A stretch of 64,000 nt of DNA from Lepidodermella squamata (GCA_047495785.1 JBLDXI010000031.1:1-64000); one strand, 5' to 3'; counted from the stretch's first letter, positions 16,805-54,285 are shown. Translations and numbers: made by a program. Notes: generated from the letters alone by a model not told the origin.

Positions 16805-19483
16805 ATTTTTCGAAACAGGTGTTATTATTGTTGCGATATATCACAACGCGAGTGATTTTGTATATTGGCTAGCATATAGGCCGTGCCTCTCGCGCTGTGT
16901 CAAAAACAAGCAGTTGAATAAACAAGAAAATTGATGACACCAATAATGTACTATTATTATTATTATCTACTCCTTCGCGCTCATCAACACGCATATTTGA
17001 CCGGAAAATACACACGTACAGGGTGGACACAACGCTCATCGCGAAAACCAGTTTGTTCTGAACGGATATTTTCGATAGCCGTATAATGTAATGAAAAATA
17101 TCATATAAAAGGCAAATGCGTAAGCTCTACTGTTAGATCCGCCGCAATTATTGGACCGTTCGAGTGGAATTCCGCTTTCTACAGCCGCTTAAAAACAATT
17201 GCGAGCAGTGCTGATAAAAAATTATTTTCTGACTTTAAATTCGCTTTTTTATGCAGAGTGGCCAATGTGAATTGTGGAATTTTATCATCGCCATCAGCTA
17301 ATGAGACTTGCCGGCTCATTATTCCTCGTCATTGAGTTTAACAACTTTTCTTTTCACTGAAATGAGATCTTCCGAACGAATTAAACATCGATACGTACAA
17401 CAAATTTTTCCGTAATTCGCTATATTTTTTATTACGTACTACCCGGACGCTGATGAGTTGTTTACCGGTAATTTCGTTGCAAAAACACGTTTATTCAGGC
17501 ACGCGCTGCCGAAATCACGTGCGAAATCACTTGCGAGTCCGAAAAACACTGGAATGAACTAAATAATTTTTGCCGCGAGAAATGACGCAAGTCGGTCTAT
17601 AATGTACGATTAACTGTCACGCGGTCTCATCTCGGATCTCGGACAGAAAAAAAAGTGTTATTTGGGCTTTCGTTTTTTATTATGAATGAGTTTTAAAATG
17701 ACCTCGTGGACATGTGAATGGCCGCGTAAGGGAAAGGGGGTTTTGATAGCGTGAGATTTTGATGCCACTCTCAGGATCACTGAAAGAGGAGTCGAACGAT
17801 ATCAAAAAATACGCTGATAGTCAACAGAGCCGCTGCAAAGAAAATGGGCTTCAAAGTTTAAAAAAAGTTGATGGAATCAAAAGCTAGGGTTTCTACAACA
17901 ACCGGAATCGATAAGCCTTTTGGGCAACACGTTGGGCTTTGCCGTATGTTAAGAAGGATGGGAGCTGCCTAGAGGTCTGAAATTCCAAATCCTCAAGAAA
18001 GCCTGAGTGGGAACCATAGAAAACGAAGTGGGAAATATTGGAAAAGACCCTCTACAGTCAACACCCTTTTTCCATTTTGCTAGAATATACGGAAAATTTC
18101 GCCAGTCCCCACTTTTCACTGTCAAATTCAAAACGAACTTTAAACTAAAATACAACCCTTGAAAAAGCGCGCCTTCGCAAGTTGAGAGAATTAGTTGGAC
18201 ATTTTCGGATTTAGAGAAGATCTGAGAAAAATTTGACTAAGCCACATGTTTCATCTCGGATTTCTTGATGGAAAACTGTTCTTTGGAATGTATGTAACAG
18301 GTCCATAGGATATTCCTTTTATAATTCTTCAGGAATATGTTCAAAGCTTTCTCTAATAAAATAAACATACATATTTCCCGCGGGCCAAGCCTCTAGAACC
18401 TACTCAGTAAAACCTGAAGTTGATAACAGAATTCCAACGGAATGTGTGTTGAAAGTGCAGTTATTTTTTCCTATTCACTGGAAATCGCATATAAAATCCC
18501 TTAGCGAACGTGGAACTTGTGACTATGTTCTGCCGGAAACCTTTTGCATGCATCAATTCAGCGGCTCAAGAAACAATTTTAAAGTTGTGAAACGTCACCA
18601 TATTTAGGCGTCCAAGTTTTAGAAAGCGACGTGCCCGAACCCCCAAACACTCCATACACGATATACCAGTTGCTCTATGATGATCAGACCTGGTCGCGGC
18701 GAAACAAATCAGTTCAACCATCGGATCTGGACGAATCCACAAATATCAAAGGACTCCTCAGTCGGTTGAAACCTGAGCGGATGGTGGCATTTTGAAAATT
18801 TAAAACGTCGAAAATTTTGTGAGAACTTTCTGATCTTACTGAGCTTACTTGATAGTAGCAGACCAGCACAGAGCCAAACCGCGCAGCTGCACTAAGGTAA
18901 GCCTGCGGAAAGTAAAACCTCTCGAACAAAATCGAAAATTGAAAAAATCGAGAGTTGAAAAACCTGCGGCGGGTATTAAATAATTCAATAGGTAGAAAAT
19001 GTTCATTATATTTTATAATTAAGTTCTTATAATAAAAATAACCCAAATTGTAAAAAACCTTTAGAATTTAGATCCGCGATTCGAAGATGAGGCGCGAGAA
19101 AAAATACGACCACGTTCCCTTCCGCGATGGAACCGGCAGCTGACCGGCTCTGGACCTAACGCGAAGCCTAGTGTCATCTGAATTGATGACGCCGGGTGCC
19201 TGCTTGTCTCTTCTTGTACCTCGTACAGTTGCTTACTGCTTACTGCTGAAGTTGCCTCGCAAAACGGTACAGGTCGGGGGAAGAGGAGCATCATATTTCG
19301 AAATCCCTATTGCCTGCGATTCCACTTCTGCCTCCGCGTTGGCGCGGTATGCATTAGTTTTGCAACTTCGATAAAATCTCGGCCGTGTAAAACATGTGGC
19401 CTAATCGCGTGGAGTAGTACTTCTCAAAACTCTGGTGTTATCAAGCGATAATCCTCTTTTTGCTAGGGAATTAACCGTAAAGT

Positions 19484-21732
19484 ATGCAAGCAAAAACATC
19501 TCAAGTTGCCTTTGGAAAGGCTGAACAGTTTGAACAAATCAGAAAGGACTGCTTACGCCGACGGCAGAAGTTTGAAGATCCAGGTGAGTAATTTCGTTTT
19601 GAGCTTTTCCATCTTTATACCTTACACCACATTATTTCAACAGAATTCCCTGCTTCCGATCAGTCTATTTATTACAGCAGCCAGCCAAGTCAGAAGTTTG
19701 AATGGCTTCGCCCAGATGTAAGATTCGTTTCATTTTGTTGATGATATCTTGAAAGTTATTTTTCATTTAGCAAATATGCTTCAAGTATCAACTTAAGCCG
19801 GAGTTGATAAGAATGGGCAGCCCAACAATGCGCTTCGATGTAGTCCAAGGCGATTACGGTGATTGCTGGCTGGTTTCCGCTTTTGCTGGCATGTCAGAGA
19901 ATGAAGAGCTATTGTTTCGCGTCGTTCCTCGGGGTCAAAGCTTCAGCGAAGACTGGTATACTGGCATGTTTCGCTTCCGCTTCTGGCGATTCTCGCAGTG
20001 GGAAGATGTGATCATCGACGACCGTTTACCCACCATTAATGGCCAATTGGTTTTTGTTCACTCGCAATCCATTGCTGAGTTTTGGCCTGCTTTAGTCGAA
20101 AAAGCCCTGGCAAAGCTGTATGGCTCGTATGAGGCGATGAAGAGTGCTTTGTTGGGTGATATCCTTACCGATCTGACTGGCGGATTAGCCGAGTCTTATC
20201 TGCTCCACGGCTCTGGCGCTAACCTGCCGAAAAATATTATCAACGTCATGTTCAAAGCACTCGAGCGCGAGTCAATTATTTCCTGCAGCATTCAATCTGG
20301 CAATCGCAATGCCGGAGCGTCGTTCCAACCAGGGCAGCGTCTCCCTAACGGTCTGATATTAGGTCATACTTACTGCGTGACCGACCTGCGAGAAATTCGA
20401 CTTATCACTCAAACTGGCGAGATTCCATTTGTTTTAGTCCGTCTGCGCAACCCGTGGGGGTCCCGGGTTGACTGGAATGGCGCATGGTCTGAGCGCAGTG
20501 AAGAATGGCAGTCGATTCCCGATGAAGACCGCCGAGAAATGGGTCTTGTTGTTCGAGGAGAAGCCGAGTTCTGGATGGAATTCCACGACTTCCTTGCTAA
20601 TTTTGATACGCTAGACCTGTGTAATCTAGCACCTGATGCTCCCGTCCGAACACCAAGGCGCTGGTCTGGTCGATTGTTCAACGGCCGTTGGATCCGTGGG
20701 GCTAACGCTGGTGGTCGGCCAGAATGCCGCGAAACTCACTGGACCAACCCTCAAGTCCGTCTTTGGTTACGAGAGCTGGATGATGACGAAGAAGGGCTGT
20801 GCTCTTTAATCGTCGAATTGGTGCAGCGAGACGAACGTGGCGTCAAGTATCGCGCCCCAAATCACGCCCATATCGGCTTTGCAATCTACCAACTACCCCC
20901 TGGGGGTGAACCGCCAGTCAACGACGAGGGCACAGCGATTGTTCAAGAGCCGCAAAATCGGGCGTTTTTCGACACGCATCAAATAATTGTCCACTCTGGT
21001 TGTTTCGCGAATAGCCGACAGGTCACTCGACGTTTCCTACTCGCCCCGGGAGATTACCTGCTGGTTCTAGCGACCTACGAGCCTAACATACCTGCTTCCT
21101 TCACTGTGCGTTGTTTCTTTGAGAAACCTGGCAATACGGCTCAGTTGCTGGACAACGACGCCGAATTAGTCAACCCGCAAGCTTCACTACTCGGCCCGCC
21201 ACTGACCCTGAGTGAATCACTGGCCCCGGAGGCCCATGAACGATTAAGGTGGTTGTTCTACGAAAGCGCTGGCGAGGAGATGAAAGTTCAGGTTTCGAAT
21301 CTACCCCAAATTTTGGCAGCTGCTTTCAATAACGAGTTCGAAATAAGTCAAACGACAGCCCGAGCTTTGTCTCTACTTGTCGACTCCGACCGAACTGGCT
21401 TTGTCGACTACAACGGATTCGCAGCTCTGTTCCGCCTGGTTGGCCAGTGGCGTCGTTCCTGGTTTGAAAATCGAACTAACGACCGGGCTGCAACGTTGGA
21501 AGCGCATCAATTAGGCCCGGCTTTATTAGCAATCGGGTTCAAGTTACCTTCCAGAGCTGTAGCTGCGATTTTACTGCTTCACGGTGATCAAAAAATGGGT
21601 CTGAGCCTTGATTCTTTCCTCACCACGGCCGCCCGCCTCCACCAGGCCGGGTCTACATTCAAGAAACTGCAACACAACGGTCGTTTAGTTCTCAGTCTCG
21701 ATCAGTGGCTTGAAGAAGCTATGGTCGCTTAA
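19484..21732 (+). CDS. Classical calpain (CysPc-C2L-PEF)
   Basis: Exons 19484-19583, 19644-19717 and 19771-21732 give FEDPEFPA...WLRP. Catalytic motifs QGDYGDCW, GHTY and LRNPWG, then AGG...NPQ (C2L) and an EF-hand-like DSDRTGFVDYNGF. Confidence 0.95.
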
Positions 21733-22109
21733 TTTGTTATTTTATAAGGTGGCAGTTCTGAGGTTGTGCTATTATAAAACAAACCCGCTTGCACGCGAAC
21801 AATTATTATTACTGGCATTCCGGTTTATGAAACTGTTTCTCGGCTATTATCTGTTTGGTACAACCAATTATTCGGTGTGGCATCTAATGCCACATATTTC
21901 CAGTTTTTTCCATCGCTACTCTGAAGCAACGCATTTTTATTGTTTATTATTATCGCTCTCAACTCCTTTTAGCAGCGCATTTTTCTTACTGCCGAATAAA
22001 TTAACTCGCTAATTTTGTTTTATTTCTTTTAGATTTTATTTGAATTTTCACGGGAACGAATTAGCTGAAATAACATTATGGTGAGTTATATTATCAATTA
22101 TTTCTGGAA

Positions 22110-22243
22110 AAATCGCATTTTTATTTAATTTTAATTGAATTTTCCACTTCGAAAGTTTGATTTTTTTAAATGCGATCAAATTCTTAGCAGACTATTTACA
22201 GTTTTCATTGAGCTCCGGCTGATTGAAAATTGTTGCAACAACT
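22110..22243 (+). ncRNA. Possible divergent H/ACA snoRNA in intron 1
   Basis: Hairpin ATCGCATTT...AAATGCGAT, H box AGACTA, second hairpin ACAGTTTTCA...TGAAAATTGT, ACA at 22238. It lacks the shared guide of the other copies. Confidence 0.45.
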
Positions 22244-22344
22244 GCGTAAAATTTCCTTTATTTTCCAGAATGTTCCGAACAATTGTGATGCTGCTCCATT
22301 CTGTTGATCGAGGTGAGTGTTCAATTACTATCAGTCTTCGAAAG

Positions 22345-22483
22345 GGCACCCTATTAGTAGTTGACGCCGTCTGAAGAGTTCTTCTTTGGATCAGGCGTTG
22401 ATTCTCCCGCCAGGTGCGAGATCTATCGAATTTTCTGTTGAATGCATTTTTCGCTTGAAACGCGATCAATGTTTCAGACAATT
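22345..22483 (+). ncRNA. H/ACA snoRNA copy 1 (5' pocket predicted for 28S helix 69)
   Basis: GCACC...GGTGC stem with pocket strands TAGTAGT and CTCCCGCC, imperfect H box AGATCTA, second hairpin, ACA at 22478. Confidence 0.75.
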
Positions 22484-22609
22484 TCATACAATTTATGTTT
22501 TCTATTCCAGAGAATCAACAACAACTTTGGATAAAGTAGCCGCGAAGGTCGATTGATATACTTTCGATCGATAAACAAGGTGAGTGACTAAATTTGATTG
22601 AATTTTTCG

Positions 22610-22746
22610 GGCACCCTATTAGTAGTTGTTTGTGCTTAATTCCACATTCAATTCTCCCGCCAGGTGCGAGACTAAAATTCGATTTCGGGACTAGTTACTC
22701 GAATTAACGCTCCTCAATTCGAAATTTGTCTTGATTTTGAACATTT
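22610..22746 (+). ncRNA. H/ACA snoRNA copy 2
   Basis: Same 5' hairpin, H box AGACTA, second hairpin, ACA at 22741. Confidence 0.8.
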
Positions 22747-22834
22747 TTCATTTCAGATTCTTCTCGATCGAATGGAGCTAATGACTTCGAATGACTTTGA
22801 GGTTAGAATATTAAATATTTTTATTGGCATGAAG

Positions 22835-22976
22835 AGCACCCTGCTATTAGTAGTTGCCGCTTAGTCTCTTGTAGGCGTAGCGTCAATTCTCCCGCCAGGT
22901 GCGATACCAAAATTGTGTCAAGGCGTTTTTTCGATAGAATTCAATTCAATCGGAAGGTTATATGACTCGGACATTA
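22835..22976 (+). ncRNA. H/ACA snoRNA copy 3 (pockets for 28S H69 and 28S UAUGAC-U-GAACGCCU)
   Basis: H box ATACCA. The 3' pocket is AGGCGTT / GTTATA, with 14 nt from the pocket to ACA at 22971. Confidence 0.85.
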
Positions 22977-23077
22977 ATTTTCTTATTTTCCAGGTGCGCT
23001 TTGGCTCCGAGAAAAATCCGGCGATCTGGCTGAATTAAGCGATTTGTAAGTTATTAATACTATTTTATTCCAAGTCT

Positions 23078-23193
23078 GGCACCCTATTAGTAGTTGCTTG
23101 TGTAATCCCCACATGCGAGATTCAAACTGATTTCGAGATTTTTTCTCAAAATTATTCCCCATAATTTTTGGATCTTCTCGATTTTGAACAACC
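23078..23193 (+). ncRNA. H/ACA snoRNA copy 4 (degenerate 5' hairpin)
   Basis: Keeps GCACCCTATTAGTAGTTG but CTCCCGCC has decayed to ATCCCCAC; ACA at 23188. Confidence 0.6.
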
Positions 23194-23303
23194 AATTTTT
23201 TATTTCAGTTTTCGATAGCGGCATTTTTCGCGATAATTGTATCGGCAGTTCTTCACAATCAAAGGTAAATTTAGTTTTCATTTACCACTAGTAGTAGTTT
23301 TAG

Positions 23304-23446
23304 AGCACCCTATTAGTAGTTGCCGCTTGCTTTTTCTCGGAAAAGCGTAGCGTCATCTCTCCCGCCAGGTGCGATAAAGACATCGCTTCAAGGCGTTTTT
23401 TCGATAGATTTTCATTCAATCGAAAGGTTATATGACGCGGATATTA
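23304..23446 (+). ncRNA. H/ACA snoRNA copy 5 (close paralog of copy 3)
   Basis: Same two pockets as copy 3, imperfect H box, ATA variant of the ACA box at 23441. Confidence 0.78.
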
Positions 23447-23642
23447 ATGTCAATTTCTCCCATTTCAGCTAATTGGCCTCCAGACCTGTCAAATATGGTG
23501 CTAAAATTCTGACTTGATTTCCTGTGATATTTTATTATGGTGGATTCTTTTCAATAAAACTGATCACTTCATTTTGATTTGCGTTTATTTTGTTTTATTC
23601 ATAATTTTTGCTCTTAAATTAGACGACTTTTGAAGGTGAAAA

Positions 23643-26600
23643 ATGGCAGATGATGCCGCAAAGGACTTGCCATTTCGAGCCGAATACGCGAAAAGTGGCC
23701 GGGCAGGGTGTCGCGGGTGCAAGGAAACTATTTCTCAAGACTCGCTACGCCTCGCGGTCATGATCCAGAGCCCGCATTTCGACGGGAAAATGCCCAATTG
23801 GTACCACTACGCGTGTTTCTGGAAGAAAGCTCGAGTTCAGAAGACAGAAGATATTCACGGGTTTCACTCACTGCGGTGGGAAGATCAGCAGAAAATTGAG
23901 AAGCAAATCGGAGGAGGTGGGGCCGCGGGTGGAGATGCGGCTGCCTCGTCCGGAAAAGGCAAAGGCAAGGGCAAAAAAGGCGCCGCGGCAGCAGCAGCTG
24001 TTGATGATTCCGGGACACGAGATTTTAAGGTGGAATACGCGAAATCAGGCGGGTCCAAGTGCCGCGCTTGCGAGGAGAAAATTCCGAAAAATGAAGCTCG
24101 GTTAGGGAAAATGGACTACGAGTCTGACCAGGCGAAGATGTACGGACCTCAGGTGAGAATATTAAACTGAATTTAGCCGACTTTCGATAGCTGCTCTTCA
24201 AAACCGCTAGGCATTTTAATTATGAAATATATCAATAGGGCTTAACGGCGAATTATCCGCTCATTTACGCCGATCCTTGCAGTTGTTAATTGTTTAAATC
24301 GAAAATAATTTTGGTAAAATTTCAAAAAAATTTGAATCGCACAAATCTAATTCTGATTTCGGAAATGCTAAAAAATGTCAGATTTCTCGAAAAACTTGAT
24401 CGAAAATTTTTCTGATACGACTACTTTCAGAATCAATCAATATTTACTTGTTGGGTTTTATCTATTGAATCGTAATTTAACTGATTTTTCAGACTCTGTG
24501 GCACCACGTTCAATGTTTTGTTGATAAACGCGTCGATCTCGGCTTCACGACTGAATTGAATGTCGAAACGTGCGCCGGATTTGCGCAGCTCGAGAAGGAA
24601 GACCAACAGCGACTGGTCACCCTACTCGGCAAGGGCGAGTCATCGCGGCCGAAAAGTGTCACAAATCAGGATAAAGAGGACGGCAAGAAGTCGTCGAAAA
24701 AACGCAAGGCCAAGGACGAGCCGGATAACGAAGATTCGATCTCAACAACATCGACCGCGGTCGAGAATAAAAAAGCAAAGGACGATGTCGCCGAGCAACT
24801 CAAGTTGCAGAATAAAGAAATCTGGGAAGTTCGCGATAAATTACAAAATTCAGATTTGAGCACGCGAGATATGAAAGAATTGCTCGAATTCAACGACCAG
24901 CACGTGCCTGAGGCCGGGAAATTGATCGAACGACTCGCTGATTGCCTGCTATTCGGCGCTTTAGCCCTGTGCCCTGAATGTAAAAAGGGTCATTTAGTCC
25001 ACTCAGATACGTGCAATGCCTATCGTTGCACTGGTCAAATGACTGAATGGGCGAAATGTGCCTATCAAACTAAGACCCCGAAACGGAAAAAGATGGTATT
25101 TCCGGACGACCTCAAAGAATCGGTTGATATTTTCAAAAAATATAAATACAAAGCGAGAGAGCGAATTTTCCCGCCAGATCGCGTTAATCCCGTGAAAAAG
25201 GAGGAGGCTACTTCGAAAACTGACGATTCGAAACCGTTATCTCTGCTGAAATTTGTTGTCAGTGGTCGAATGACACGGCCTGTCAACGAATTGCGCCAGG
25301 CTTTGAGTAATTTAGGCGCTACAATAGCCGCTGATGTCGATGGCACGGTCATCGCCCTGGTCACGAGCTCAGCTGAGGCGAAAAAAGGCTCGGCGAAATC
25401 GAAAATAATCCAATCAGCCGAAACTGCCGATATCCACGTTGTCGGCGAGGAATTTATCACCGAAGTCCTTGAAGTGGCGAAAAATTCGAAATTGAAAGTT
25501 GTTGTTCAAGACCCGGGTCAACCTGCAGACCCGGTTCCGGACGGATTCACCAATTTGGCTGATTTGATTGTGAAACATCAGATTGTGCCGAATTGCGGTG
25601 GTAATGTCAATTCGAGGATTCGGTTGAATTTGGCGAAGTCGATGGGTATTGTTGCGAAATCAACTGCGGCGTTGAAATCGGGCCTGAAATCGGATTATAA
25701 AAGCGGCCCAGAAACGAAAAAGTTCAAGGTCAAAGGCCGCTCGGCCGTTGATCCAGACTCAGGTTAGTTCATTTTTTGAAAAAATATTTAAAAAAAGAAA
25801 TGTCGGAACATTTTACGCGAGAATATGTAATTGGTATAAATTTTCAGGAACAAAATTCAAGAACAAAAAAAATGTCTGAATCTAAGATTTAAATTAATTT
25901 TTGCAATTCCAAAACTAAAAAATTGAAAAAAATTATTATTTCGATTCAATTAATTTTTCGTAAATACGAAACCGAAACAATAGGTATTCTTTTTAGCCAT
26001 TTTGTTGCCTTTTTCAAGTAATCTCGCGTCTCGCGTATTATTTTCGGTCACATCTTCGGACTATTCGATACAGGCGGCGGTCAGAATAGCCGATCGTCGC
26101 CTCACTTTGCGTCCGTACATCAATTTTTCACGGCTTGAAAAGCCAACTTGACTACAAAGTCGATCGGTCGTTACCGTGGCCGAACGGGACAGATTTCAGT
26201 TGGACATTACATTTTCTCGTTAAATTCTTTTCCTAGGTTTGGACGACGAAGCTCACGTGCTGGAAGAAGGCTCTTGCATTTGGAATTGCGTCCTCAATTT
26301 GGTATCGATCGAAAACAAAATGAATTCCTACTACAGGCTACAATTGATAGAAAGCGACACCAAGTAAATTTTGTGATTTTTTTCCTCATTTTTTTTATAA
26401 TTTATTCCGAATTTTATCAGGAAAACTTGGTGGGTTTTCCGAGCTTGGGGTCGAATTGGCACAACCATTGGCAGCAACAAACTTGAGAGGTACTCGAGTA
26501 AGGACAAAGCCAAGGATAATTTCGAAGAGGTGTTTCTTGAAAAAACCGGCAATCCGTGGAATAAGGGCGCGTTTTCCCGCCAGAAAATCCCAGGCCGCTT

Positions 26601-29600
26601 CTACCCGGTCGACGTTGATTTCGGGGTCGACCCTGATGAACAGGCGAGCAGTTTGTCGCTGGACAAGGCCGGCGGTTCGTCGAAGCTGCCGAAGGAGGTT
26701 CAAGAGTTGATCCGGTTGATCTTTGACGTCAAAATGATGAAGAAGATCATGGCTGAGATGGAGATTGATTTGAAGAAAATGCCACTCGGTAGACTGAGCA
26801 AGTCGCAAATTCAACAGGTTTGTATTACAATTTTTTAATGGGGCTGGTTTGATTCAAGTTGACGTGGTCAGTTTAGTCAGCTTTCCGAACATAAGAGGAT
26901 AATTATTAGCATGGGTGATTCCTTGCGTGCTAAAACAATTAAAACCTTTAAAATCCTTAATCGCGCGTTCAAGAAGACTGGAAAGATAGTGTTTGTATAG
27001 TTTTCTATTTAATTTTCTGCTCCCAGCTGAAGACCAAAAGCATGAAAGGGAATAATCAGTTGTTTCATCGAAGATTTAAAAGATTTAAAAGAGAAGTTAA
27101 TTTCATGGCGATAGAGGATCCCCGCGGTCGCTCGAGCTTTTGAAGGATCAATTTTCTTAACTGCGGACTCCACTTAGGTCCAGACCACTCTGTGTAGTCA
27201 TCGCGTGTTCTTTGATCTCATAGTGCACGAGACCCCGCGTTGGGCTTACTGCAACAGACACGGAGAAGTTATTTCCAGGACTTGACGTTGGCATTTTCGT
27301 AATAGCCCGCTTGCCTTTTTTGCCCGACCGAATCACCCTCGTGCCCAGAGACATTGATTGAAACTCTAGACACAGAACGGGTTGGCCGACGGAAAAACCG
27401 GCAAGAGAATCACCAGCCGGTTGAACCGTGAATTGAGGCCATATTGAGGCTCTGACATTTGAGTGGTGTTGAAAGACGGTTCATTCGAATAGACGCCGGT
27501 GTCGAACGGCATGGAGGATAACAAACTGACATTCGAGGGTGTTGTGAAAGTCACGGTGGTAGCTCGGTTGCTGACTGCGGGCTCTTGAACAATAGTTCTC
27601 GTAATCGACATTTGTCGATGTCGGAGAAACGCATTGTGGGCGGGAAATCGATCCATGCCACTATGGTGCTGCGGCGCGGACGGACGCGTCGACGTTGGCG
27701 GGCGATAACCAGACCTAAGCTTATAAGGCAAAAACTTGGGGAAGCCGTCAACAAAAATTGGATTCATGAATTCGCCCAAATAACGACCTATCTTATTGCA
27801 GCCGTAACAGGCAGTTACGGTGCGTCGACAAACAGTGCAGCGACTAGCGGCGTGTCCGCAACGGGCAGTCTCAGGCGATGCCAGGCCTTCACCTGCATCC
27901 CCGACGACCAGTGCCCCGTTCGGAGGCAGAACTTCGTTGCGAGCAGCAATCTGGATGGCATACTCCAACCTAAAGCGGGTAAAAATATTCACCAAGATCA
28001 ACGTTGCGTTATCTTTTAAGTAATTCGAAACAAAGTTCTTGCAGCCCTCCGTTTGGATCGGCAGAGTTGCGAAAAACAATTTTGCCAGGATTTCTTGATT
28101 GTAAAAAGAATCTCCGCCTTGCTGCGACTTCAATTTGTTAAGGACCTTGCTAAAACTTGCGATATGGGCATCGGGCGAAGTCCCTAAAAGAAAAACAGGT
28201 AAATCGCGGTAAGCCACCAGCGACTGGACGACTGGACGAGTGGATGGTCGAGCGTGAGAGCGGCGTTGACGTCATTCCAACACTTCACGGCCGAATAGTT
28301 ATCATTGATGATGAACGTAAGGTGTTCACCAATCGTTCGCGCGATTGCATAGCGGATCTCGCCATTGAGGATCGTCCACCAACGCTCGTTGTTACCATCA
28401 GCCGGCGGTTCAGCGGTTCCCGTCATGATTTCCAGCGCACCTTTCAAATGAAACATCTGGTTCCGCCAAGCGGCCAGGTTGGTCGTGTCGTTGAGTACAA
28501 CCTTGAATTCTTCGCTTCCTGAGCCCATAACAATATTGAGTTTCCAAATTGCGCACGAGCCGATAAATCGAATAAAAATTGCGTAGGTTCGTGCGACTAG
28601 CACCGAATTAGACAGCATTCCAGCCACAGGGCTAGCACACCTTCCACACACCTAAAGCAATAGGGAAAATTAAAATTTAATTTTTCTAAATTTTCTTAGG
28701 CTTACACCGTGCTATCCGATCTGCAAAAAGCTATCGAAAACCCACCCAGCGACGGCGCCTCGAACAAGCAGTATGTTTTCATCGACGCTTCAAACCGCTT
28801 CTACTCGCTGATCCCGCACGATTTCGGCATGAATGCCCCGCCTCTCATCGATTCTTTGAAGGCGATTCAAGACAAAACGACCATGCTGGACGAACTGATG
28901 CAAATCGAACTCGCGTATCGAATGTTGTCCGATTCCGGGCAAAGCGGCGCCGAAGACCCGTTGGACGTGCACTACAAGCAGTTGAAGACGGAAATCGTCC
29001 CTGTTGATAAGGCGAGTGATGAGTTCAAGCTGTTGGAGCGGTATGTCAAGAACACGCACGCGGCCACGCATTCGCAGTACAAACTGGTCGTCCAGGACGT
29101 GTTTCGGGTGGATCGCAGCGGCGAGGCGGGTCGGTTCGAGCCGTTCCATAAACTGCATAACCACCAGCTGTTGTGGCACGGGTCGCGGCTCACCAATTTC
29201 GTCGGCATTCTCAGTCAAGGTATGCATGAAAACATTAATAGCTATGCTGTCATGCGGGGAAACTTTGGACAAAACCCGTGTTTTTTTTCGGTTTTAAGAT
29301 TATTCCTAATTCAGAAAATTAAGACAGAGATGTTAACCTGTCCAAAATTACCCAGCGCAACCCCTTTTAACTGAGTTATTATCCAATTATTCAAATTTCA
29401 AATACACATAAGTAACGCAAAATATAAAATGCCATACGAATAGTAATCAAGTATGTCTCATGTGAATGGGAAATGGGATTAAAAAATCCGAAGAAATGTT
29501 ATCCAACCAGTTAAAAACCGAAAATTACCGAACCAGTTACCATCGGGGTTTTTCAGGGTTTTCTCCGGTAAATTTTTAATTTATTCGGTAGAGTCGTGGA

Positions 29601-30437
29601 TAAATGATGGAAGACATCCCCCAGCGGGCTTAATTCCAAAAAATAACCTATTTATTATCTAAAAAATGTCCAAAATTGAAAATGGTATGCCCATTTTAGC
29701 GAATAAACGCCTAATTTTTCAATCTTGAAATTTTGAACTCTTCTGGAATTTTTTTACCATCTTGATGAAATGTTGATAATTTTTAGGTCTAAGGATCGCG
29801 CCTCCTGAAGCGCCGTCGACTGGTTACATGTTCGGAAAGGGCGTTTATTTCGCCGATATGGTCTCGAAATCGGCGAATTACTGCTTCACCTCGGCTATGA
29901 ACAACACGGGCCTGTTGCTGCTATCAGACGTGGCTCTCGGAAATCCTCACGAGGTTCTACATGCGAAGAGCTTCAGCAAAGCGCCTCAGGTATTTATTCA
30001 AGATGCTAAGGCTGAAAATGTATCGAAAATTGAAATACAGAAAAAATGAGGAGGATTTTTTAATTTAAAGTTTTTTTGAAATCCCAAATTTTTTGAACGT
30101 GATTTTTGAATTATCACTCGAAATATGGTTTTTCGAGTTTCACATCTCTAAAATATTTTCTCATAATTTCGATTTTCGTACTTGAAATGTAATTTTTTGT
30201 GTTTTATTCCAGGGATTTCATTCGGTCAAAGGCTGTGGCATGACGTGTCCGGATCCGAATGGCGCCGCCCAGTTGCCGGTGGCTGACGCCGGTTACGAAA
30301 TCACGGTGCCCTGTGGCAAGCCCAAACAGTCGGGCGCTGCTGGATCGTCGCTGCTCTACAACGAATTCATCGTGTACGACGAGGCTCAAATCCGCCTGCG
30401 CTACCTGCTGAAACTCGACTTCAAATACAGCGTTTGA
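23643..30437 (+). CDS. PARP1: Poly(ADP-ribose) polymerase 1 (Zn1-Zn2-Zn3-BRCT-WGR-HD-ART), 7 exons
   Basis: [13 protein letters not shown]...WYHYAC, second finger [74 protein letters not shown] (H-Y-E triad intact). Exons ~23643-24152, 24493-25762, 26237-26363, 26421-26817, 28700-29219, 29787-29989, 30213-30437. Confidence 0.97.
27170..27375 (-). mobile_element. Fragment of a Tc1/IS630-type DDE_3 transposase
   Basis: Frameshifted SFN...[37 protein letters not shown] resembles the segment after the first catalytic Asp of DDE_3 transposases. Confidence 0.5.
27740..28650 (-). mobile_element. Degenerate Ty1/copia retroelement 5' end (putative LTR, PBS, frameshifted gag) in a PARP1 intron
   Basis: Putative LTR starting TGTG at 28650. 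PBS GTTATGGGCTCAG (28519-28531) resembles the copia half-tRNAiMet PBS GGTTATGGGCCCAG. Gag-like NLAAWRNQM...SAVKCWNDV and [12 protein letters not shown]...FFATLP, with a degenerate zinc knuckle [10 protein letters not shown]. Confidence 0.7.
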
Positions 30438-31515
30438 ATAACACATTCCAGTCGGACATTTTATGCACAAAATATCAGAGACCATATTGACAATGCCATG
30501 AACATTTTTCATTTCTATATAACCTCATTACGCAGTGATATTATAATAATATTGTAAAAATTACGCGTGTAATAAAAAATTCGTGTTTCTTGAGCGAATT
30601 TCCACGGAAAAATTTGAGCTGAAACTGGTTTGAAATTGCTGCAACGCCTGTTGTTTGAAGAAGCGGACTCGTGATAATGAATGTTTTACGGTTGTTGAGA
30701 ACATTACCTGCTCTTGATTTTTCGTTTCGTTATGCCATTTTTCAGTATATTAATAATTTTGTGAGGCTATATTCCGGTTGATTGTATCGAATTATCTTGT
30801 ATTAAATAAAGGGAAATTTGAAAATATTCTTGCAGAGTTTTTCATCGAAGTAACACGGTGAGTGAATCGGGATTCATCGCAAACCCACCCGGTAGCGTGT
30901 GGTAAAGATGAGCAGCTTGTGCGAGAAACGTGATGTTATTCACGAGAAACGTGAACCTCATGATATTTCACGCAAATTATTTCAATATTTAAGCTTGATT
31001 TCGTGGCAATTTAGAACTCTTGTCTCTTGTCTGCCTAACCTTGAAGAATTTCAAGTTGCGGGTAATTTTGATAGATCTGCCCTAAATTCGGATCGACTTT
31101 TGATTTGGTTTTCGAGAACACAGAAATTCCCACTTTCCTTATTCATGCCAAATATGAATAAAACATCTAAAAGGGAAACATCTAAAAAGGTTAAGAACCT
31201 GTTACTCCTATCGTTTCAAAGGTAACCCCGCGTAAAGGTATATTCATCTGACTGAGCCAGAATTAACGGCGATCTATATAATAAAAGTAGAATTAACTTT
31301 GAACGTCATGGAATTTGAGAGAAATTTTGAAAAAATGGGGTCACAGTTACGCAACTGCTGGAAAGATGTAAGCATAAGATTTCAACTTTGTTACGCAATC
31401 ATAATCCGAACATTGTTCGATTGGTTCGTAGACAATCACAGCCGCACAACGTCATTTTTCATCGCTGTTAGCACGACCTTTTTCAGAATTTTTGTCAACT
31501 CGAAACGCGATAGTA

Positions 31516-34500
31516 ATGACTCGATCCGAGCCGAAATCTGGCCACGACCGGCCTTACAAAGCTGAGTACGCGAAAAGCGGTGGTTCGCACTGCCACCGGT
31601 GTAACAACATGATTGCCGATGGCTCGTTACGCTTGGCTGAAATGCCCGATGCGGCGACGGTTCCGGACGCGCGGACGCCGCAGTACTTTCACTTTTCCTG
31701 CTTCTGGCGCAAACATACCGCCAAAAGTTTGAACGAATTCGAAAATTGGCGCGATTTACGCTCGGCTGACCAGCAAGCTATGGAAGAAGCTATTCACGGT
31801 TGGCTGAACCTTTCAATTTAAAACTTCTTCAAATTCCAAAAATTTTAATTATTTATTTAAATTAAAATTTTTTAATTTTTTTCAGGTATGCATACTGCGG
31901 GCGAGACGACCGAGGAAGAAGAAGAAGCGTCGGAACTTGCGGGCGAAGTTGCAACTGAGAAGCAAAGGGTGCCGGAAGCTGCTCAAGCGGCACTCGAGGC
32001 TGGCGCCCATCGAGCCGGTCTTCGAACTTTTAAAATCGGCTATGCTAGGTCACGTGGCAGCCGGTGCCGGGCTTGCGATGAAAACATCAACATGGGCGAT
32101 GTTCGAATCGGAAAACACGACGGTAATTTTATTGCCCTAATTTCAGACATTTTCGAAGTTTTAAATTTGAAAATTTTGATTTTTAGTGGACACCGAACAT
32201 GCATTGATGTACGGACCCCGGATTCAGTATCACCACATCAGATGCTTTGTAGCGAATCGACAAGAGCTGGACTTTCCGTCCAATGCGAAACTCGAACAAA
32301 TAGCCGGATTCAACACGCTTCGCGACCACGACAAACGGCGATTGGTCGAAGCCCTGGGCGGTAAGATGCCACCTAAGCAGACACCAAAGGGTGGTGACCA
32401 AGAGACCCGACCTGGCCGAGATTCCGGTCTTGGCGATGAGGAGGAGCATCATCAAAAAACTACGACGACCTTCAAACCGCATGTTGCCGCTGATTTCCGG
32501 GGTGAAGGCATCAAGACGATGAAGCCGGAGGAGGCGGAGAGGGAGAGGGAGAGGGAGGAAGAGGCTGGGGGCGAGGAAGAATACGAGGAAGGCGATGTGT
32601 CTGAAGGCCCGGCTCGGCGGGTCATTGCTCGGCGCCAATCAAGAAAAATGGAGCATGAGCAGCAGCAACATCAGCAAAAGGAAAATCGCGAGCAAGAAGA
32701 GCAGCCGATGGAGCAGGGGAGTGGGGGCGATGAGGTGAAGGAACAAAAATCACCCCATTTAGCGGCCTTCCGACCTCCGCCCTTACTTGAATCAGGTAAA
32801 ATTTAAAAAAATTGGCGGAATGAGGCCAACATTTTTCGATTTTTTCAATTTTGAAATTTTAAAATTTAAATTTTTCAAAATTCGAAATTAGTGCGGATCC
32901 AGGATATTACTTGGAAATTTTTCCAATTCGCTTTCACATTTTCAATTTTAATATTTTACTATTTTAGGTGAAAGGCCGTTGAATAACCTTCGATTTTTCA
33001 TTGCGGGTCGCATGCAGCGCCGCTCGCTGGCCGAGGTGCGCGAGGACCTGGTTCGCCTCGGCGCCACTATTGTACCGGAACCTGATGACACGACCGTGGC
33101 GGCTGTTGTCTCCGATTACAAGGCCCGCATCGGCTCCCACAGCACCCACGTCCGAGCTGCCATAAAAGCCGATGTTCACGTCGTGGGCGAGGTAATCTTT
33201 TTTTTTAATTTTCCTGCATTTCTGTCGATTTTTTCAATTTAAAAAAATGGAAAAAACTTTTAAACATTTTCAAAAATTCAAAAATCTCCATTTTTCATTT
33301 TCATTTTATGAATTTTGTTATTTTTTAGGATTTTGTGGATGACTGTGTTGCCGCCGCTCAAGCTGGTCGCCTCGTCGCTGACCCTGCCTCGTACCACGAG
33401 GCGAAACATAACGGCTCGGTATGGTTGGCTGAGTTGGTCGAGCGTCACGCTCTGGTTTCGAATTGCGGCAGTGACGTGGCGGCCCGAATTCGCCGCTGTT
33501 TAGCCGCGTCCCACGAAATCGGCGGCCGGCACTTGGGCAAGTCAACGGCCGAGGCGATTGAGTCGTCGCCGAAAAAAGGCGAGAAAGGCGAAGGCGTGGA
33601 GGAAAAACGCCCGAAAGTGGAACCTCGGCGAACGGTTGATCCCGAATCAGGTACTTCTAAAAATTTGAAAATAATTCAAACTTGAAATTTGATTGATTTC
33701 CCTATTTCTGGGAAGTCTCCAGAATCTTGCTATGATTTTTTCCAAAAATAAAGATAGGTCTATAAGCATTTTCACCAATAAAGTCGAGTTCCCAGCGCCC
33801 AATTTTTTAAGCGCCGAATAGCTATTTTGGCTTATTTTCTTTTGTTGATAGGTACTGAGGCTCTGGGATTCTCGGTACCAGTTAGGTAGAAACATGTTTA
33901 TTTTAGGCCTCTATGACCTTTGGTATCGGAAAAATTACTGATTTGAAAAACCGACCCGTGGAATCACCATCGGCATGAAAAAATTTAAGATAAAAAAGAT
34001 TAGGTACCATATTTTGGAGAAATTTAGTGCTGGAACCCAAGGGTCACTTGCTGGAACACTTGGACTGATTAGATATTGCGTGCGGAACCTTGAAGTTTCG
34101 TGGAAATTCCCAAGAGTTTCAAGCGCTTTCGAGAAAAAATTAAATTCTGTTCAAAAATTCAGTTGGCTTAAAAAAAGTGGCCACATAAAGCAGAGAAAAT
34201 TCTGGACGAAAAATAGTATCTTGCCGATGCAAGTCGTTTGCGACTAGCTGAGATGGAAGATAGAATTGAAAAATCGCCGGTGAATTTCAGGAAACAAGTC
34301 CAAAGAAGAGCTTTTGCGTAGCCTTTCAATTTGAAGTTAGCTGTTGGCAGTTACAGTGATTGGAATGATTTCAACTGAGCGATTGAGCGTTGTAATTTTG
34401 CATCTTAGCTCAGTGTTTGGTTCAGCTCAATTCATCATCGATATGTTAATCAGCCTGATTTTGAGAATTCGGGTCACCATTCTCCATTAAAAAGGACGTG

Positions 34501-41681: not shown

Positions 41682-42041
41682 ATGAGTACTGATGATAAGA
41701 AAAAGTTGAGAGCCGAAAAGTTCGGTGCGATCGAGCCTGAACCAGCTAAAGCATCCACAGAAAAGAAAGTCGAGAGGTCGCAACGTTTCGGTACGGATTT
41801 GCCTACAGATGTCAAGAAAAAGACTCGAGCTGAACGGTTTGGGTCTGCAGCGAACGGCAAAGAAGCAGCAGCACCTGAAGCTACTCCAGAGGTGAAGGAG
41901 AAGCGTGATAAGCGCAAGGAACGCTTCGGCGCCGTGGAAAACGGCAGTGATAAGCCTGCTGCAACCGCGCCTGCAGATCCTGAAGTTGAAGAGAAGCGAA
42001 AAAAGCGCTCAGAGCGCTTTGTCGAGGCTCAAAGCTCTTGA
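41682..42041 (+). CDS. SARNP/Tho1/MOS11-like mRNA export factor lacking the SAP domain
   Basis: 119-aa ORF with five RxxRF(G)-type motifs (RAEKFG, RSQRFG, RAERFG, RKERFG, RSERFV); AATAAA at 42140. Confidence 0.8.
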   Translation: MSTDDKKKLRAEKFGAIEPEPAKASTEKKVERSQRFGTDLPTDVKKKTRAERFGSAANGKEAAAPEATPEVKEKRDKRKERFGAVENGSDKPAATAPADPEVEEKRKKRSERFVEAQSS

Positions 42042-42190
42042 ATCATCGATTGTTTGCTCGTTTAGCATTGATGTTTTTTCGTTTCTCTATCGTTTCCGTG
42101 TGTTATGTGTAAATATCTTGTATCATTGCTACCAATCACAATAAAAAAGTCAACGTTTTATAATCAAATTTGATTTATAGGTCGCAAGGA

Positions 42191-45100
42191 ATGCATTCTA
42201 AAATGACGTCTCAAATGATGATGCAGACGAAGAAGGTTACCGCAGTTGCTGAACGTCGGCTTGACACTCAAGCGATTGTTCAAGGCAATATTGAAGAATT
42301 GAATCGTTACATCCAGCAGAACGAGTATCATTTGAAGTTGAAAGATCACGAGTTACGCCAAGCTGAGACTCATGTGAAGACGCTGAAAGATGAGTTGCAG
42401 AAGGCGCAGATTATGAACCAGCAGTTGGCGTCGAAAATGCAGGTTGAAGAGCGAGCGCGAGCTGATATTGTCGCGAGAACTCAAACTGTCCAACAAATGT
42501 ATTCGCGCTTGCTGGAAAATGCGAAAACTCTGGAGATTTCTTTCGCTAAAAGTTGATTACTCGCATTTCATCGTCGATTTTCTATGATTTTTCTTTCTGA
42601 TATTAGCTGAAGAGACTTGTAAATCAGCCTTAAAGAAAAACGATGAGCAAGAAGATCGAATTTTGAACCTCGAAAGTCGATTAGCCGAGCTTACTGAACT
42701 TGCTCTCCAGAAGGACGCTGAATACAAAAGTCGAGGTTGAAATTTTGTTAAATTTCGAGAATCGGAAATAGTTTTTCTAAAATATTTAGTCACCGATCTC
42801 AAGCGTGAGATGGAAGAGAACCAGGCGCATTTCGAATCTGTTACCAGTGATCTCAATCGATCGCTTGATTGCCGCCTAGAAGAAATCGAAGAACTGAGGC
42901 GCCAAAGGGAAAAATTGGATCTCGACCTGACAGAGAAGATCAAACAAATTGAAGCTGTATTGCTAGAAAATGGTCTAAATTTTGCAAAATTCTTCGTTAT
43001 TTGGATATCATCGCATATTTTTTACAGGTTCTCTATTGAAAAGAATCGAGGCTTTGGAAAATTTGAAGCAAGAAATCGAGTTGAAACTGAAAACTCAAAT
43101 CGAGCAATATGAAGCTTTGGACGAATCATTGAAAGCTACCAAAGCCGAGTTGGAAAAAAGCGAGGCGAATCTTTCGGCCAAAGAAGCAGAATTGGAATCC
43201 GCCAGCCGGCTGATTGCTGAACTCGAGACTCACATTGCTGATCTCAAGATAAAACTGGCTGAAAAATCGGACGAATCAGATAGCTTGAAAGCGAAGTTGT
43301 CCGACCAGATCGTTGAAACGGAGACAATTGGCGAATTAGCGTACAATTTCGCTTCGAAAATCGACTCCCTTGATCTCAATTTGACCGAAAAATCTCGCGA
43401 GAATGATTCGCTGAAAACTGATATTGCGACGCGTGAAGCCGAAGTCGAAGTTTTGAAGACAGAACTTGTTAATGAGAAATCGGCCCTGTCAGATTTGCTG
43501 GCGCGATTTGATGAAACGGATCGAAAATTGAATGGTTTAATGAGTGAGCGAGATGATTTGCTGAAAAACTTGGAAACGAAGGAAAAGAATGTCGCCGAGC
43601 TCAAGTGAGTTTTTTTGTAATAGGGCTCGAAATTCAGAAATACGTTCACAGAAATGTGAAAAATTCAGACTTTTTTTAGTGTCAGTGATAAAATAACTCT
43701 TTAGATTTTTTATGCTATTCTGATATTTCATTTTGTTTCAATTTAGATCCAGCATTGAAATTCTGCAAGTTGAAATCGAGGCTAAACAAGTGAAGATCGA
43801 TACGAGTGAAACAATGATCAAGGTAACAATTTTTGCGATTACGACCCATCTTAGTTTTTGATCTTTGAAAAATGTGATGTTGGAAGATTTTAAGTATAAA
43901 GATAGTTCAGCCACCTGAATTTAAACCGGTTTAATATTTTAAAAACCGATGAAGTTCGTAAATTGGGCGGTTCCCATTTAAGGATTAACATTTAATGTGG
44001 TTTCAAGTTTCAGTTTGCGCTTGGTGCCAATTTTCAAAATTTGGTCTAGCTAACAAATTATGTGAATATTGAAATCAGCGAAAATTGTTCGTTGAGCTTC
44101 TAATAATTTGTTCCACAAAACGCCGCCTTTCCGCATTAATTGTGTGAAGAGTGATGTAATGCGTGCGTAATGCATACGGTATACGATAGTGAATCGGTAG
44201 TATAAAGCTAGATGGGTGTATTAATCATCGGTTGTTATGCGCACTACTCCCTCGCACCGCCCTATTTACTTGTGTAGTCAGGATGGCCGAGCGGTCCAAG
44301 GCGCTGCGTTCAGGTCGCAGTCAGTTTCTACTGGCGTGGGTTCGAATCCCACTTCTGACACAATGTTTTTTCCTCTTTTTTATTTTTTATTTTTTATTTT
44401 TAGAATCTCGATGCTAAAATTGTGGAATTAACATCTGCATTGGCTTCTGCTAAAAATGAGGCGAAGTCATGCGAAGAAAAATGGCTGGGCGAAAGGGCTG
44501 ATTTTTTGGAAAAAATCCGGCTAGCTGAATTGGAAGCCACCGAAGCAAAACAGGAAATTTCAGCCCTTCAAGGCGCGAAATCGAAAATTGACCAGCAATT
44601 AACAGCTCAACGCTCTGAAACAAAAAAGGCCGAAGTCGCTCGTAAAGCTTTGCAGGAAGATCTAGAGAAGAAAAACGATGAAATCACGGCTTTGCGTCAG
44701 GAATTGGACGAAATGAAGGCGGATTCTGAGAAAACGGCTGGAAAATCGGATGAAAAACTGAAGAAAGCCCTGGAGAAACTGCATCAAGTCGAGGCTAATT
44801 ACTCGAAAAAATCGAAAGAAAACGACGAAATTTCGTCCGAATTATCAAAAATTCGAGACGATCTGAGTGAGAAATCTGATGAAATCGATAATTTAAAATC
44901 GAAAATCACCGATCTGGAGGAAAAATTGACGAAAGAGCGAAAAGCGGCGAAGGCTGCTGAGAAAAAATTGGAGGAGAAAGAGCGTGAATTTGCGGCGACG
45001 TTGGAGGCGGAGAAGGAGCAGCTGCGATCGCGATCTTACGTCAAATCAACGGAATCTGTGTTGCAGGAGGGTCCGCAGCAAGAAACCGAGCGAACGCCGG

Positions 45101-52272: not shown

Positions 52273-53383
52273 CGCTGGTCGAAATAAATGTTGATGAAAA
52301 AAGTAGCTACCGAAATACTATTATCAAATGATTGAAATAGAGACTGTTTTGAAGTTTTATAGCATGAATGGAACGTGCCCAATAGCTTTCAAATTTCGAG
52401 CACAGCACGCGATTGAAACCGCTAAACCGTAAATTTAGTGGCCAGTGTTTCAGGTTTATTGCTCGCCATGAATGAAACGATTTCACATGGCTACTTTGGA
52501 GGATGATTCTCTTATGTAAAAACAGATAGGAACTAGGCAGATAGGAAATCACACGTTTGTAATTTGTAACTGTTTCCGGATGTTTTCATATTTCCTATTG
52601 GACCCAATGGTAGCGTTTTCGAGCAGCCTAAATTTGAAAAAATCCTGTGAGGTGACTACACAGCCCCAGGGTGCCTAAAAAGGCATATCTCCGCACCGGG
52701 AAATCGTATAAATTCGGTGAAAATGGATAAATAACCAGTGTCCCGCCGGCTTGGTGATGAGCAAAGATATTGTGGGATTGTCGCCAAAGTGTCATCAAAA
52801 TCGATTGTGTACAAATTGTGACTAAACGGAATGCATTTCTAGGTTGATCTCACCACGCTGATGAAATGTTTCTTTGAGAGCGGCTTCCTAGCTATCACCG
52901 TTCTGGAGATAAAACCGCTCAGGTGTGACACCGGGTAAGGTCACGTGACCAACTTGACAGTGGAACTTCTCCGTAACCGTAACCGTAAATAATAAAAATA
53001 TGTTGCGGTTTTCGAATTCTTGGTCCTCCATTTCTTCTCTATCGAAGCAGCGTGTGCCAATCGGGAAAGAAAATGTAAAGATTTCCTCAAACACATTTTG
53101 GGCACTAATGGGTAAGTACCGAAAATATTACCAATCAGTTTCATCATCTCGGATTTTTTGAATTTTTTCGATGAAACGAGCCACAACTTTTAATATCCAG
53201 CTTTAATATGGAAATAAAGCAAAATATTTTGTAGGTACAAATATTATTGGAGAACATTAGGAAATTACTGAAAAAATACAGTCATATTAGGAGCTAAAAT
53301 CTCGTTGGCAATCGAACGAAAGTTGCTGAGTCGTGAGTAACAAAATCGATAAGCAGTAAATTATTGGTCAATAAAAATCGCAT

Positions 53384-54285
53384 CTAGCCATTAATGTCTC
53401 GATTGCTGTGATGCTGCTTCTTGGTCGATTTTTTAGCCGAGTGCGAGGCAATTATCGACTTGATTTCGTCACTTTTCGCCAGGTCGATCGCCGTCGAGCC
53501 TGAGTCATTCTTCATCGTGGCGTCGGCGCCTGCCTCGAGGAGGGCCTTGACCAGTTCGGCACTGCCCTGCCATGATGCGATCATCAGCGCGGTAGAACCG
53601 TTATCTGACGTCTGCGCATTCACATCGGCGCCATAGCTGATGAGGGTTCGAGCTGTTTCGACTCGCCCGCTGGCTGTAGCCAACGCTAAAGCAGTCCAAT
53701 TCGACGGGCACTTATAATTAGGATCGGCACCTCCTAGAAATTAAAAAAAAATCCAATTCAAAAATATTTTCAATTCACTTTCACCAAAATTAAGTTTTTC
53801 ATAAACCAGCAATTTCTAAATTAATTTTTGAAAATTTGAAAAATTCGAATTTTAAATTTCTAAATTTGAATTTTAAATCAGATTATTCAAATCAGTGAAA
53901 AATTTCCAAAAAAACATTAGAATTCTGAAATTTTCGAAATTTCGAAATTTTAAATTTAGGAATCGTTATTTGAAAAAAATAGAAGTGTGTCAAATTGACC
54001 TTCAATTAGCGCCCTCACAACGTCCGTATGTCCGTTATTAGCCGCCCTCACCAGAGCCGTCCAACCGTCGACGTCCTGAGCAGATATATCAGCGCCGTGT
54101 TCGATCAGCAGTTGCGTCGATATTAGACGGCCGTTTTCAGCCGCTAGAATGAGCGGCGTTCGCTGACTCGGCGTTCGGCCGTTGATATCTGCCCCGCAGA
54201 CAATTTTTAGTTTCACCTCGATGTCCTCGCCATTTTGAGCCGCTTCGAGCAAATCCTCTGTATGGTACTCGATACCGCTAATCAT
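53384..54285 (-). CDS. Ankyrin-repeat protein (5' end uncertain)
   Basis: Repeats TPLILAAENG, TALVRAANNGH, TALALATASG and TALMIASWQG, each followed by a GAD-type motif; intron ~53736-53999. Confidence 0.9.

Follow-up and report, generated by a model that had tools for sequence, protein, structure and literature searches.

A possible spliced-leader operon joining a calpain gene, a non-coding H/ACA snoRNA host gene and PARP1 in the gastrotrich Lepidodermella squamata

In the spliced-leader (SL) operons of Caenorhabditis elegans that are resolved with SL2, unrelated genes lie on the same strand, the upstream gene has its poly(A) signal within ~100 nucleotides (nt) of the trans-splice acceptor of the downstream gene, and a U-rich element is present between the cistrons. 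The operons of tunicates (Ciona, Oikopleura) and flatworms (Schistosoma) make use of a single SL that serves operonic and non-operonic genes alike, and their intercistronic regions are very short or absent. Flatworms are the phylum closest to gastrotrichs in current phylogenies. The locus described here lies in a 64,000-nt window of the genome of the gastrotrich Lepidodermella squamata (GCA_047495785.1 JBLDXI010000031.1:1-64000; G000:C31), "the window" being the whole stretch of DNA that was analyzed, while genome-wide searches covered the 121.2-Mb, 151-contig assembly, from which COX1 is absent. It contains a calpain gene, a non-coding host gene for small nucleolar RNAs (snoRNAs) of the box H/ACA class, and the gene for PARP1, which an initial annotation made from the bare sequence had proposed to be co-transcribed and resolved by trans-splicing. 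The present analysis suggests, with a probability of roughly 50%, that calpain, host gene and PARP1 form one SL-resolved operon in which a leader would be added at 22033 and 23623. The features on which this reading depends are as follows.

19484-21732, plus strand: calpain gene; exons 19484-19583, 19644-19717 and 19771-21732, ATG at 19484, stop codon TAA at 21730
21733-22032, plus strand: calpain 3′ untranslated region (UTR) and acceptor; AATAAA at 21995-22000, T-rich 13-mer ATTTTGTTTTATT at 22012-22024, AG at 22031-32
22033 to ~23575, plus strand: non-coding snoRNA host gene; seven exons, canonical GT-AG introns, AATAAA at 23553-58
23559-23622, plus strand: gap between host gene and PARP1; 62 nt separate AATAAA 23553-58 from the AG at 23621-22, and the 13-mer ATTTTGTTTTATT occupies 23587-23599
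23623-23642, plus strand: PARP1 5′UTR if AG 23622 is used; contains an in-frame TGA and is only 52% identical to the second copy of the locus introduced below
23643-30437, plus strand: PARP1; ATG at 23643, TGA at 30435, seven exons assigned with Pfam exon by exon

The three genes are unrelated and are arranged head to tail on the plus strand almost without spacer, and at both junctions the upstream poly(A) signal lies less than 100 nt from the downstream acceptor. The layout given in the initial annotation (AATAAA at 21995 and 23553, AG at 22031-32 and 23621-22, and a PARP1 ATG 20 nt beyond the second AG) is correct on the sequence in every coordinate, and its gene identities also held: the first gene is a calpain (Peptidase_C2, Calpain_III), the last is PARP1 with its full domain order, and the middle gene is a non-coding H/ACA host. 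Acceptors were scored with a splice-site matrix trained on 14 curated and ~57 automatically collected introns, all from the window, and were ranked among the 7119 AGs on both strands of the window. At the calpain-host junction, the AG follows AATAAA after 30 nt, stands behind a T-rich tract and scores 9.5 (top 1.3%). The AG before PARP1 scores 5.2 (top 4.3%), which is on a par with the two weakest proven introns of calpain.

The 13-mer ATTTTGTTTTATT is present as an exact copy in both the calpain-host and the host-PARP1 gaps. Elsewhere in the 64 kb it has only one near-match (53213, minus strand), which likewise falls in an interval from a 3′ end to the following ATG. This 13-mer would be a U-rich element positioned 3′ of the cleavage site; read in this way, its presence in both gaps favors real 3′-end formation at both AATAAAs. 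A composite signal was defined as an AATAAA followed within 15-80 nt by an acceptor scoring at least 5, and then within 45 nt by an ATG opening at least 60 codons. Three occurrences are found in the window (one of them an internal PARP1 intron), whereas block shuffles yielded 0.24 on average and never more than 2, and the pattern therefore exceeds chance, if only modestly.

In its unrelated genes on one strand, its short distance from poly(A) signal to acceptor and its U-rich intercistronic element, the locus resembles the operons of C. elegans, and in its very short intercistronic regions it resembles those of tunicates and flatworms. In contrast to C. elegans, the gaps are shorter (30-62 nt), a non-coding snoRNA host would be the middle cistron, and no specialized downstream leader is evident in this genome, as the two leaders described below (SL-A and SL-B) cap the same elements. 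In contrast to tunicates and flatworms, the leader sequence is unrelated and the SL genes lie inside the ribosomal DNA (rDNA) spacer beside the 5S gene.

Conservation was probed with a second copy of the locus (G000:C48:610000-639999; L064-L066), which was aligned to window positions 18305-48622. This copy is collinear over at least 30 kb at 91-95% identity, is about 5% diverged, and represents either the other haplotype or a large duplication. Between the copies, identity is 73-88% in plain introns and ~99% in 3′UTRs (calpain 99.3%, PARP1 99.3%, and 99% for a Tho1-like gene located further downstream). The AATAAA, the 13-mer and the AG are retained in the second copy at both junctions, at the host-PARP1 gap despite a 5-nt indel. 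The block that extends from the calpain stop codon to 20 nt beyond AG 22032 (21733-22052) is 99.3% identical, while the next 250 nt are 83-89% identical. This conservation is neither proof nor disproof of leader addition. Two other readings of the conserved calpain 3′UTR were considered: a structured RNA was rejected, as no stable fold is predicted (z -0.56), and a coding reading of the overlapping 100-codon stop-free frame at 21710-22012 is disfavored by a 1-nt indel in the second copy.

The use of spliced leaders by this organism, which the initial annotation had implied, is supported by SL-like genes in the rDNA spacer and by leader exons fused at their donor to the 5′ ends of unrelated retroelements. 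In the rDNA unit L004 (G000:C62), the 5S gene is found on the opposite strand in the spacer and is adjoined by two SL-like genes, each with a ~32-nt leader, a GT donor and a downstream hairpin. The SL-A leader, AAATATCTGCGTATCGATTTTCGAATTCTAAG (ending in ...TTCGAATTCTAAG), is followed by the donor GTATGA, and the gene contains an Sm-like site (AAUUUGA) and a 3′ hairpin. The SL-B leader, AAATATCTGCGATTGAATATTAAATTTTCTGAG (ending in ...AAATTTTCTGAG), is followed by the donor GTTAGT. SL-A has 543 candidate copies and is found in every rDNA repeat among the matches listed, and SL-B recurs at the repeat spacing within rDNA arrays. The fold of SL-A is not unusually stable (z -0.25); a third SL variant folds as a textbook SL RNA (z -4.1) with the Sm site AAUUUUCUGG. 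None of the SL families in Rfam matched the SL-like genes. SL-A, SL-B and 5S are seen in each rDNA spacer that was read (L004:3100-4600; L062 for SL-B), and L004 has a ~0.9-kb insertion at the SL-B donor that itself opens with a third SL-like gene.

Both leader exons also occur in the genome without their introns. Searches with the SL-A exon gave 24 such matches as a 24-mer and 44 as a 14-mer, compared with 2 for the control, mostly on megabase contigs, and the SL-B exon, which is likewise dispersed, gave 507 matches, a number that includes rDNA copies. In the capped copies that were read, the predicted donor marks the exact end of the leader, beyond which more than 10 unrelated sequences are found; the 5′ flanks are unrelated as well, and the 5′ truncation varies. 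In three cases (L015 versus L049/50, L006 versus L059, L008 versus L041), the 5′ end of one long interspersed nuclear element (LINE) carries SL-A or SL-B at the identical junction. One capped element contains a first open reading frame (ORF1) with a CCHC knuckle followed by the start of an endonuclease-like ORF2. The simplest reading of exact-donor junctions with many partners is that RNAs capped with a leader exist, that these were reverse-transcribed, and that the SL donors are used. Based on the SL-like genes and the genomic retrocopies, leader trans-splicing in this genome is credible. Retroposed genes with relict leader sequences are known from dinoflagellates, where genomic copies starting with a leader exon are taken as DNA evidence of reverse-transcribed trans-spliced RNAs. 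The capped copies in L. squamata differ in that none is a cellular gene; they consist of LINE-like elements and unidentified repeats.

Full-length LINE-like elements (L005-L063, on many contigs) open with the complete SL-A or SL-B leader, ending in a pyrimidine-rich ...YAG. It is speculated that, by way of this YAG, splicing might act on a capped copy again at the same position. Hammerhead-ribozyme-like cores (CUGAnGA ... helix ... GAAAC) are also observed after the leader in L014, L025-L028, L035-L037 and L039, which may be compared with Penelope-like elements or retrozymes.

For the three genes under study, the proposed mechanism is as follows. First, RNA polymerase II would read through from the host gene into PARP1, possibly already from calpain. 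Next, the upstream RNA would be cleaved and polyadenylated after its AATAAA (21995; 23553), aided by the shared U-rich 13-mer. Finally, the downstream RNA would gain its capped 5′ end through the ~32-nt leader added at the following AG (22032; 23622). We infer both the leader additions, at 22033 and 23623, and the shared precursor from the arrangement of these signals.

Several points weigh against an operon at this locus. The acceptor before PARP1 at 23622 is mediocre, and its final 8 nt are A-rich. The calpain looks tissue-type, which would be an odd choice for an operon head. The sequence would look the same for an operon and for an outron transcribed from a separate promoter located in the upstream gene. 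Leader-capped retrocopies of cellular genes were not found among the partners identified, as the ORFs that follow the leader either lack a Pfam family or are LINE-like with a CCHC knuckle; elements residing within SL genes, read through from the SL promoter, could be the source of part of the capped copies. An exact scan of both leaders against JGI metagenome contigs gave 0 matches, and no same-species protein came up in word searches with exon 1 of PARP1, exon 3 of calpain and the exon at 42182-42553. No leader trace is expected in protein databases for PARP1 or calpain because of in-frame stops in their 5′UTRs, and for the sole gene with an open 5′UTR (42182-42553) the protein search for a leader trace found nothing.

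The middle gene is non-coding and is a genuine host of H/ACA snoRNAs. Its exons and the repeat units found in its introns are listed below.

22033-22080, 22269-22312, 22511-22579, 22757-22801, 22994-23045, 23209-23264 and 23469-~23575, plus strand: host exons, from splice-site reading
22344-22488, plus strand: H/ACA unit 1, in intron 2; hairpin-hinge-hairpin-ACA tail (z -2.3), pocket complementary to large-subunit ribosomal RNA (rRNA), 5′ hairpin 100% kept in the second copy
22609-22745, plus strand: H/ACA unit 2, in intron 3; H box AGACUA and ACA tail present, fold z -3.0, 5′ hairpin 100% identical in the second copy
22835-22981, plus strand: H/ACA unit 3, in intron 4; H box AUACCA and ACA tail present, fold z -2.7, 100% identical in the second copy
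23075-23125, plus strand: unit 4, degenerate, in intron 5; repeat family D3, 3′ strand of the pocket missing, 18 gap columns relative to the second copy
23303-23450, plus strand: H/ACA unit 5, in intron 6; repeat D1, 82% like unit 3, predicted fold non-canonical (z -1.9)

The first host donor is GTGAGT at 22081, and introns 2-6 contain one repeat copy apiece. In exon 3, each of the three frames is interrupted by stops, and the host gene therefore has no possible open frame. Compared with the second copy, the host exons are 76-100% identical overall, with exons 1-2 at only 76-84%, while introns 2-4 and 6 are 96-99.5% identical. The host exons are thus less constrained than the snoRNA introns, which is a classic mark of a non-coding host gene. 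The constant 5′ pocket, made up of CUCCCGCC on the 3′ side and GUAGU on the 5′ side, pairs with the large-subunit rRNA sequence GGCGGGAG-UA-ACUAU, leaving the UA unpaired; this pocket is located 15 nt from the H box, and the target is position 2565 of the rRNA copy in L004. Together, the pairing and the 15-nt spacing indicate box H/ACA guide geometry. The intronic H/ACA snoRNAs would be aimed at one large-subunit rRNA uridine, their predicted target. The H box consensus ANANNA fits in units 2 and 3, and units 1 and 5 have no perfect match to it. Unit 5 looks to be decaying, and its 5′ hairpin differs from the second copy by 3 substitutions and 4 gap columns. No Rfam snoRNA family matched the host units at the gathering score or at E values up to 10, as expected for a phylum without curated snoRNAs.

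The host gene is similar to vertebrate host genes of the UHG/GAS5 type in that each snoRNA has an intron to itself, the exons are short and lack an open frame, and these exons change more quickly in evolution than the snoRNA introns. In contrast to UHG/GAS5, the units here are all paralogues with one guide pocket, and the host is flanked on either side by a protein-coding gene no more than 70 nt away. The point specific to this locus is the non-coding host gene inside the chain. It is tentatively suggested, at somewhat short of an even chance, that this H/ACA host gene is an internal cistron of a gastrotrich SL operon, in which case one promoter would serve both a guide RNA for ribosome modification and PARP1, a sensor of DNA damage, and the leader would be present on a non-coding RNA as well as on the PARP1 mRNA.

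Other explanations of the layout have to be weighed against an SL-resolved operon. The one that survives best, although it is unlikely, is that the genes are independent and tightly packed, with promoters for the host gene and/or PARP1 inside the 3′ part of the upstream gene and with AGs that are outron leader acceptors or incidental. It is textbook knowledge that most trans-spliced nematode genes lie outside operons. The 99.3%-identical 300 nt before and around AG 22032, followed by a sharp drop, would suit the promoter of a highly expressed host gene, and conservation also rises ~125 nt 5′ of AG 19466, in front of calpain. However, the other 3′UTRs in the window (those of PARP1 and the Tho1-like gene) are equally conserved, so the block needs no promoter, and a PARP1 promoter would be confined either to the 175 nt from the last host acceptor to the ATG or to the snoRNA-filled host introns. 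The initial annotation had stated that there is no room for a promoter; this is true of the gaps themselves, which are too short, but does not extend to the upstream gene, within which a promoter may still lie.

A less probable explanation is that the host exons are a multi-exon PARP1 5′UTR, transcribed from one promoter 5′ of 22033, with a donor in the last exon cis-spliced to AG 23622 and no leader added. AATAAA 23553 would then lie within the last intron or mark a short non-coding isoform, and PARP1 would still be co-transcribed with the snoRNAs. The placement of snoRNAs in the 5′UTR introns of protein genes is common in animals, as textbooks record, and a candidate donor exists at 23498 (ATG/GTGCTA; score 5.5, top 7.7% of GTs) that the second copy retains unaltered; splicing from it would remove 125 nt, and a still weaker donor (score 2.1) is used by one proven host intron. 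However, 23498 is the sole candidate donor in the last host exon and is weak, and the conserved AATAAA and the calpain-type U-rich 13-mer intervene between this donor and the acceptor. Furthermore, the host exons contain several ATGs upstream of that of PARP1, which would burden PARP1 translation, and the first host exon begins at acceptor 22032, which would still need a partner. A donor-like AAG/GTGAAA at 23636 was rejected, being absent from the second copy.

The least probable explanation, that no leader is added at this locus, that the AATAAA-AG pairs arose by chance in AT-rich spacers and that the capped copies come only from retroelements read through from SL-like genes, would fit the chance probability of ~0.05-0.1 for each acceptor alone and the finding that the identified leader partners are all retroelements, but it is countered by the more than 10 unrelated partners (mostly on megabase contigs with non-rDNA flanks) that share the exact exon-intron boundary of two SL genes, by the identical 13-mer in both gaps and by the enrichment of the composite signal over shuffles.

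The initial annotation had also pointed to acceptor AGs without an obvious donor close upstream of other ATGs. These candidates fared unevenly: the acceptor at 42179 is good and those at 35857 and 19466 are passable, whereas 41651 and 13533 (minus strand) fail and 31486 has a donor at 30858.

19465-19466, plus strand: acceptor-like AG 17 nt 5′ of the calpain ATG; score 3.5, top 6.5% of AGs, AG also present in the second copy
31486, plus strand: acceptor; score 8.6, top 1.8%, donor evident at 30858
35857, plus strand: acceptor; score 5.3, top 4.1%, passable
41652, plus strand: AG; score 0.9, top 12%, unconvincing; the 100 nt 5′ of it are 100% kept in the second copy, as an exon or promoter would be
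42179-80, plus strand: acceptor; score 7.8, top 2.2%; AATAAA 42140 followed after 35 nt by the AG, the same layout as the calpain-host junction
13533, minus strand: AG; score -5.9, not acceptor-like

AG 19465-66 is a possible leader site of calpain as the first gene of the chain. At 41682-42190, a single-exon Tho1/MOS11-like gene (119 amino acids) with AATAAA 42140 is followed by the acceptor of the next gene, making a second operon-like pair in the window. A tRNA-Leu(CAG) at 44277-44361 (plus strand) is apparently intronic in the long coiled-coil gene that starts at 42191. On the minus strand, 53140-53390 has the build of a third such junction: an AATAAT-type signal precedes a copy of ATTTTGTTTTATT with one mismatch, after which come an AG and, ~55 nt further on, an ATG.

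Pfam searches were run per exon for all gene models. The calpain domains are Peptidase_C2 (2.7e-86) and Calpain_III (2.4e-29), and a protein word search places its closest relatives among spiralian calpain-9-like proteins. The proteins of the window match spiralian relatives best, namely those of Lingula, Owenia, nemerteans and molluscs. The best relative (P0077) has 71% identity and is encoded on a 39-kb ENA contig. Between the window and the second copy, 58 of the 62 substitutions in calpain exon 3 are at third codon positions, indicating that both copies are under selection.

The exons of PARP1 and the region at its 3′ end are as follows.

23643-24152, 24493-25762, 26237-26363, 26421-26817, 28700-29219, 29787-29989 and 30213-30437, plus strand: PARP1 exons
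30571-30859, plus strand: PARP1 3′ end and next start; AATAAA at 30571-76 and 30805-10, AG at 30834-35, 22-nt mini-exon at 30836-30857, donor GTGAGT at 30858

The PARP1 domain order in Pfam is complete, comprising two zf-PARP domains, PADR1 (the third zinc finger), BRCT, WGR, PARP_reg and PARP. The profile positions continue over exon borders for WGR (1-25, then 29-74), PARP_reg (1-46, then 47-135) and PARP (1-67, then 69-134, then 138-199). PARP1 intron 4 (1.9 kb) contains two long antisense ORFs of 283 and 155 amino acids (27366-28651, minus strand), neither with a Pfam family, which may belong to a nested gene or be the remains of a repeat. The region at the 3′ end of PARP1 is 97-100% kept in the second copy, with the second AATAAA, the AG, the mini-exon and the GTGAGT all at 100%. 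The gene 3′ of PARP1 is PARP-like, with an ATG at 31516 and a zf-PARP domain, and its acceptor at 31486 is served by the donor at 30858. The mini-exon is the probable start of this PARP-like gene, and the chain may continue from PARP1 into it as a fourth member.

A search of the literature library returned no paper relevantly combining gastrotrichs with spliced leaders, trans-splicing or operons. The L. squamata genome paper mentions neither operons nor trans-splicing, and its gene models were produced by an automatic predictor (PMC11660948). Where genes are tightly packed, automatic models that take no account of leader addition may merge neighbors or misplace their starts. If the proposed operon is real, Gastrotricha would become one of the few animal phyla known to have spliced-leader operons. 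This would bear on the number of origins of SL systems in Spiralia, as flatworms, the likely sister group, have one. It would also mean that a non-coding snoRNA host gene can belong to an SL operon.

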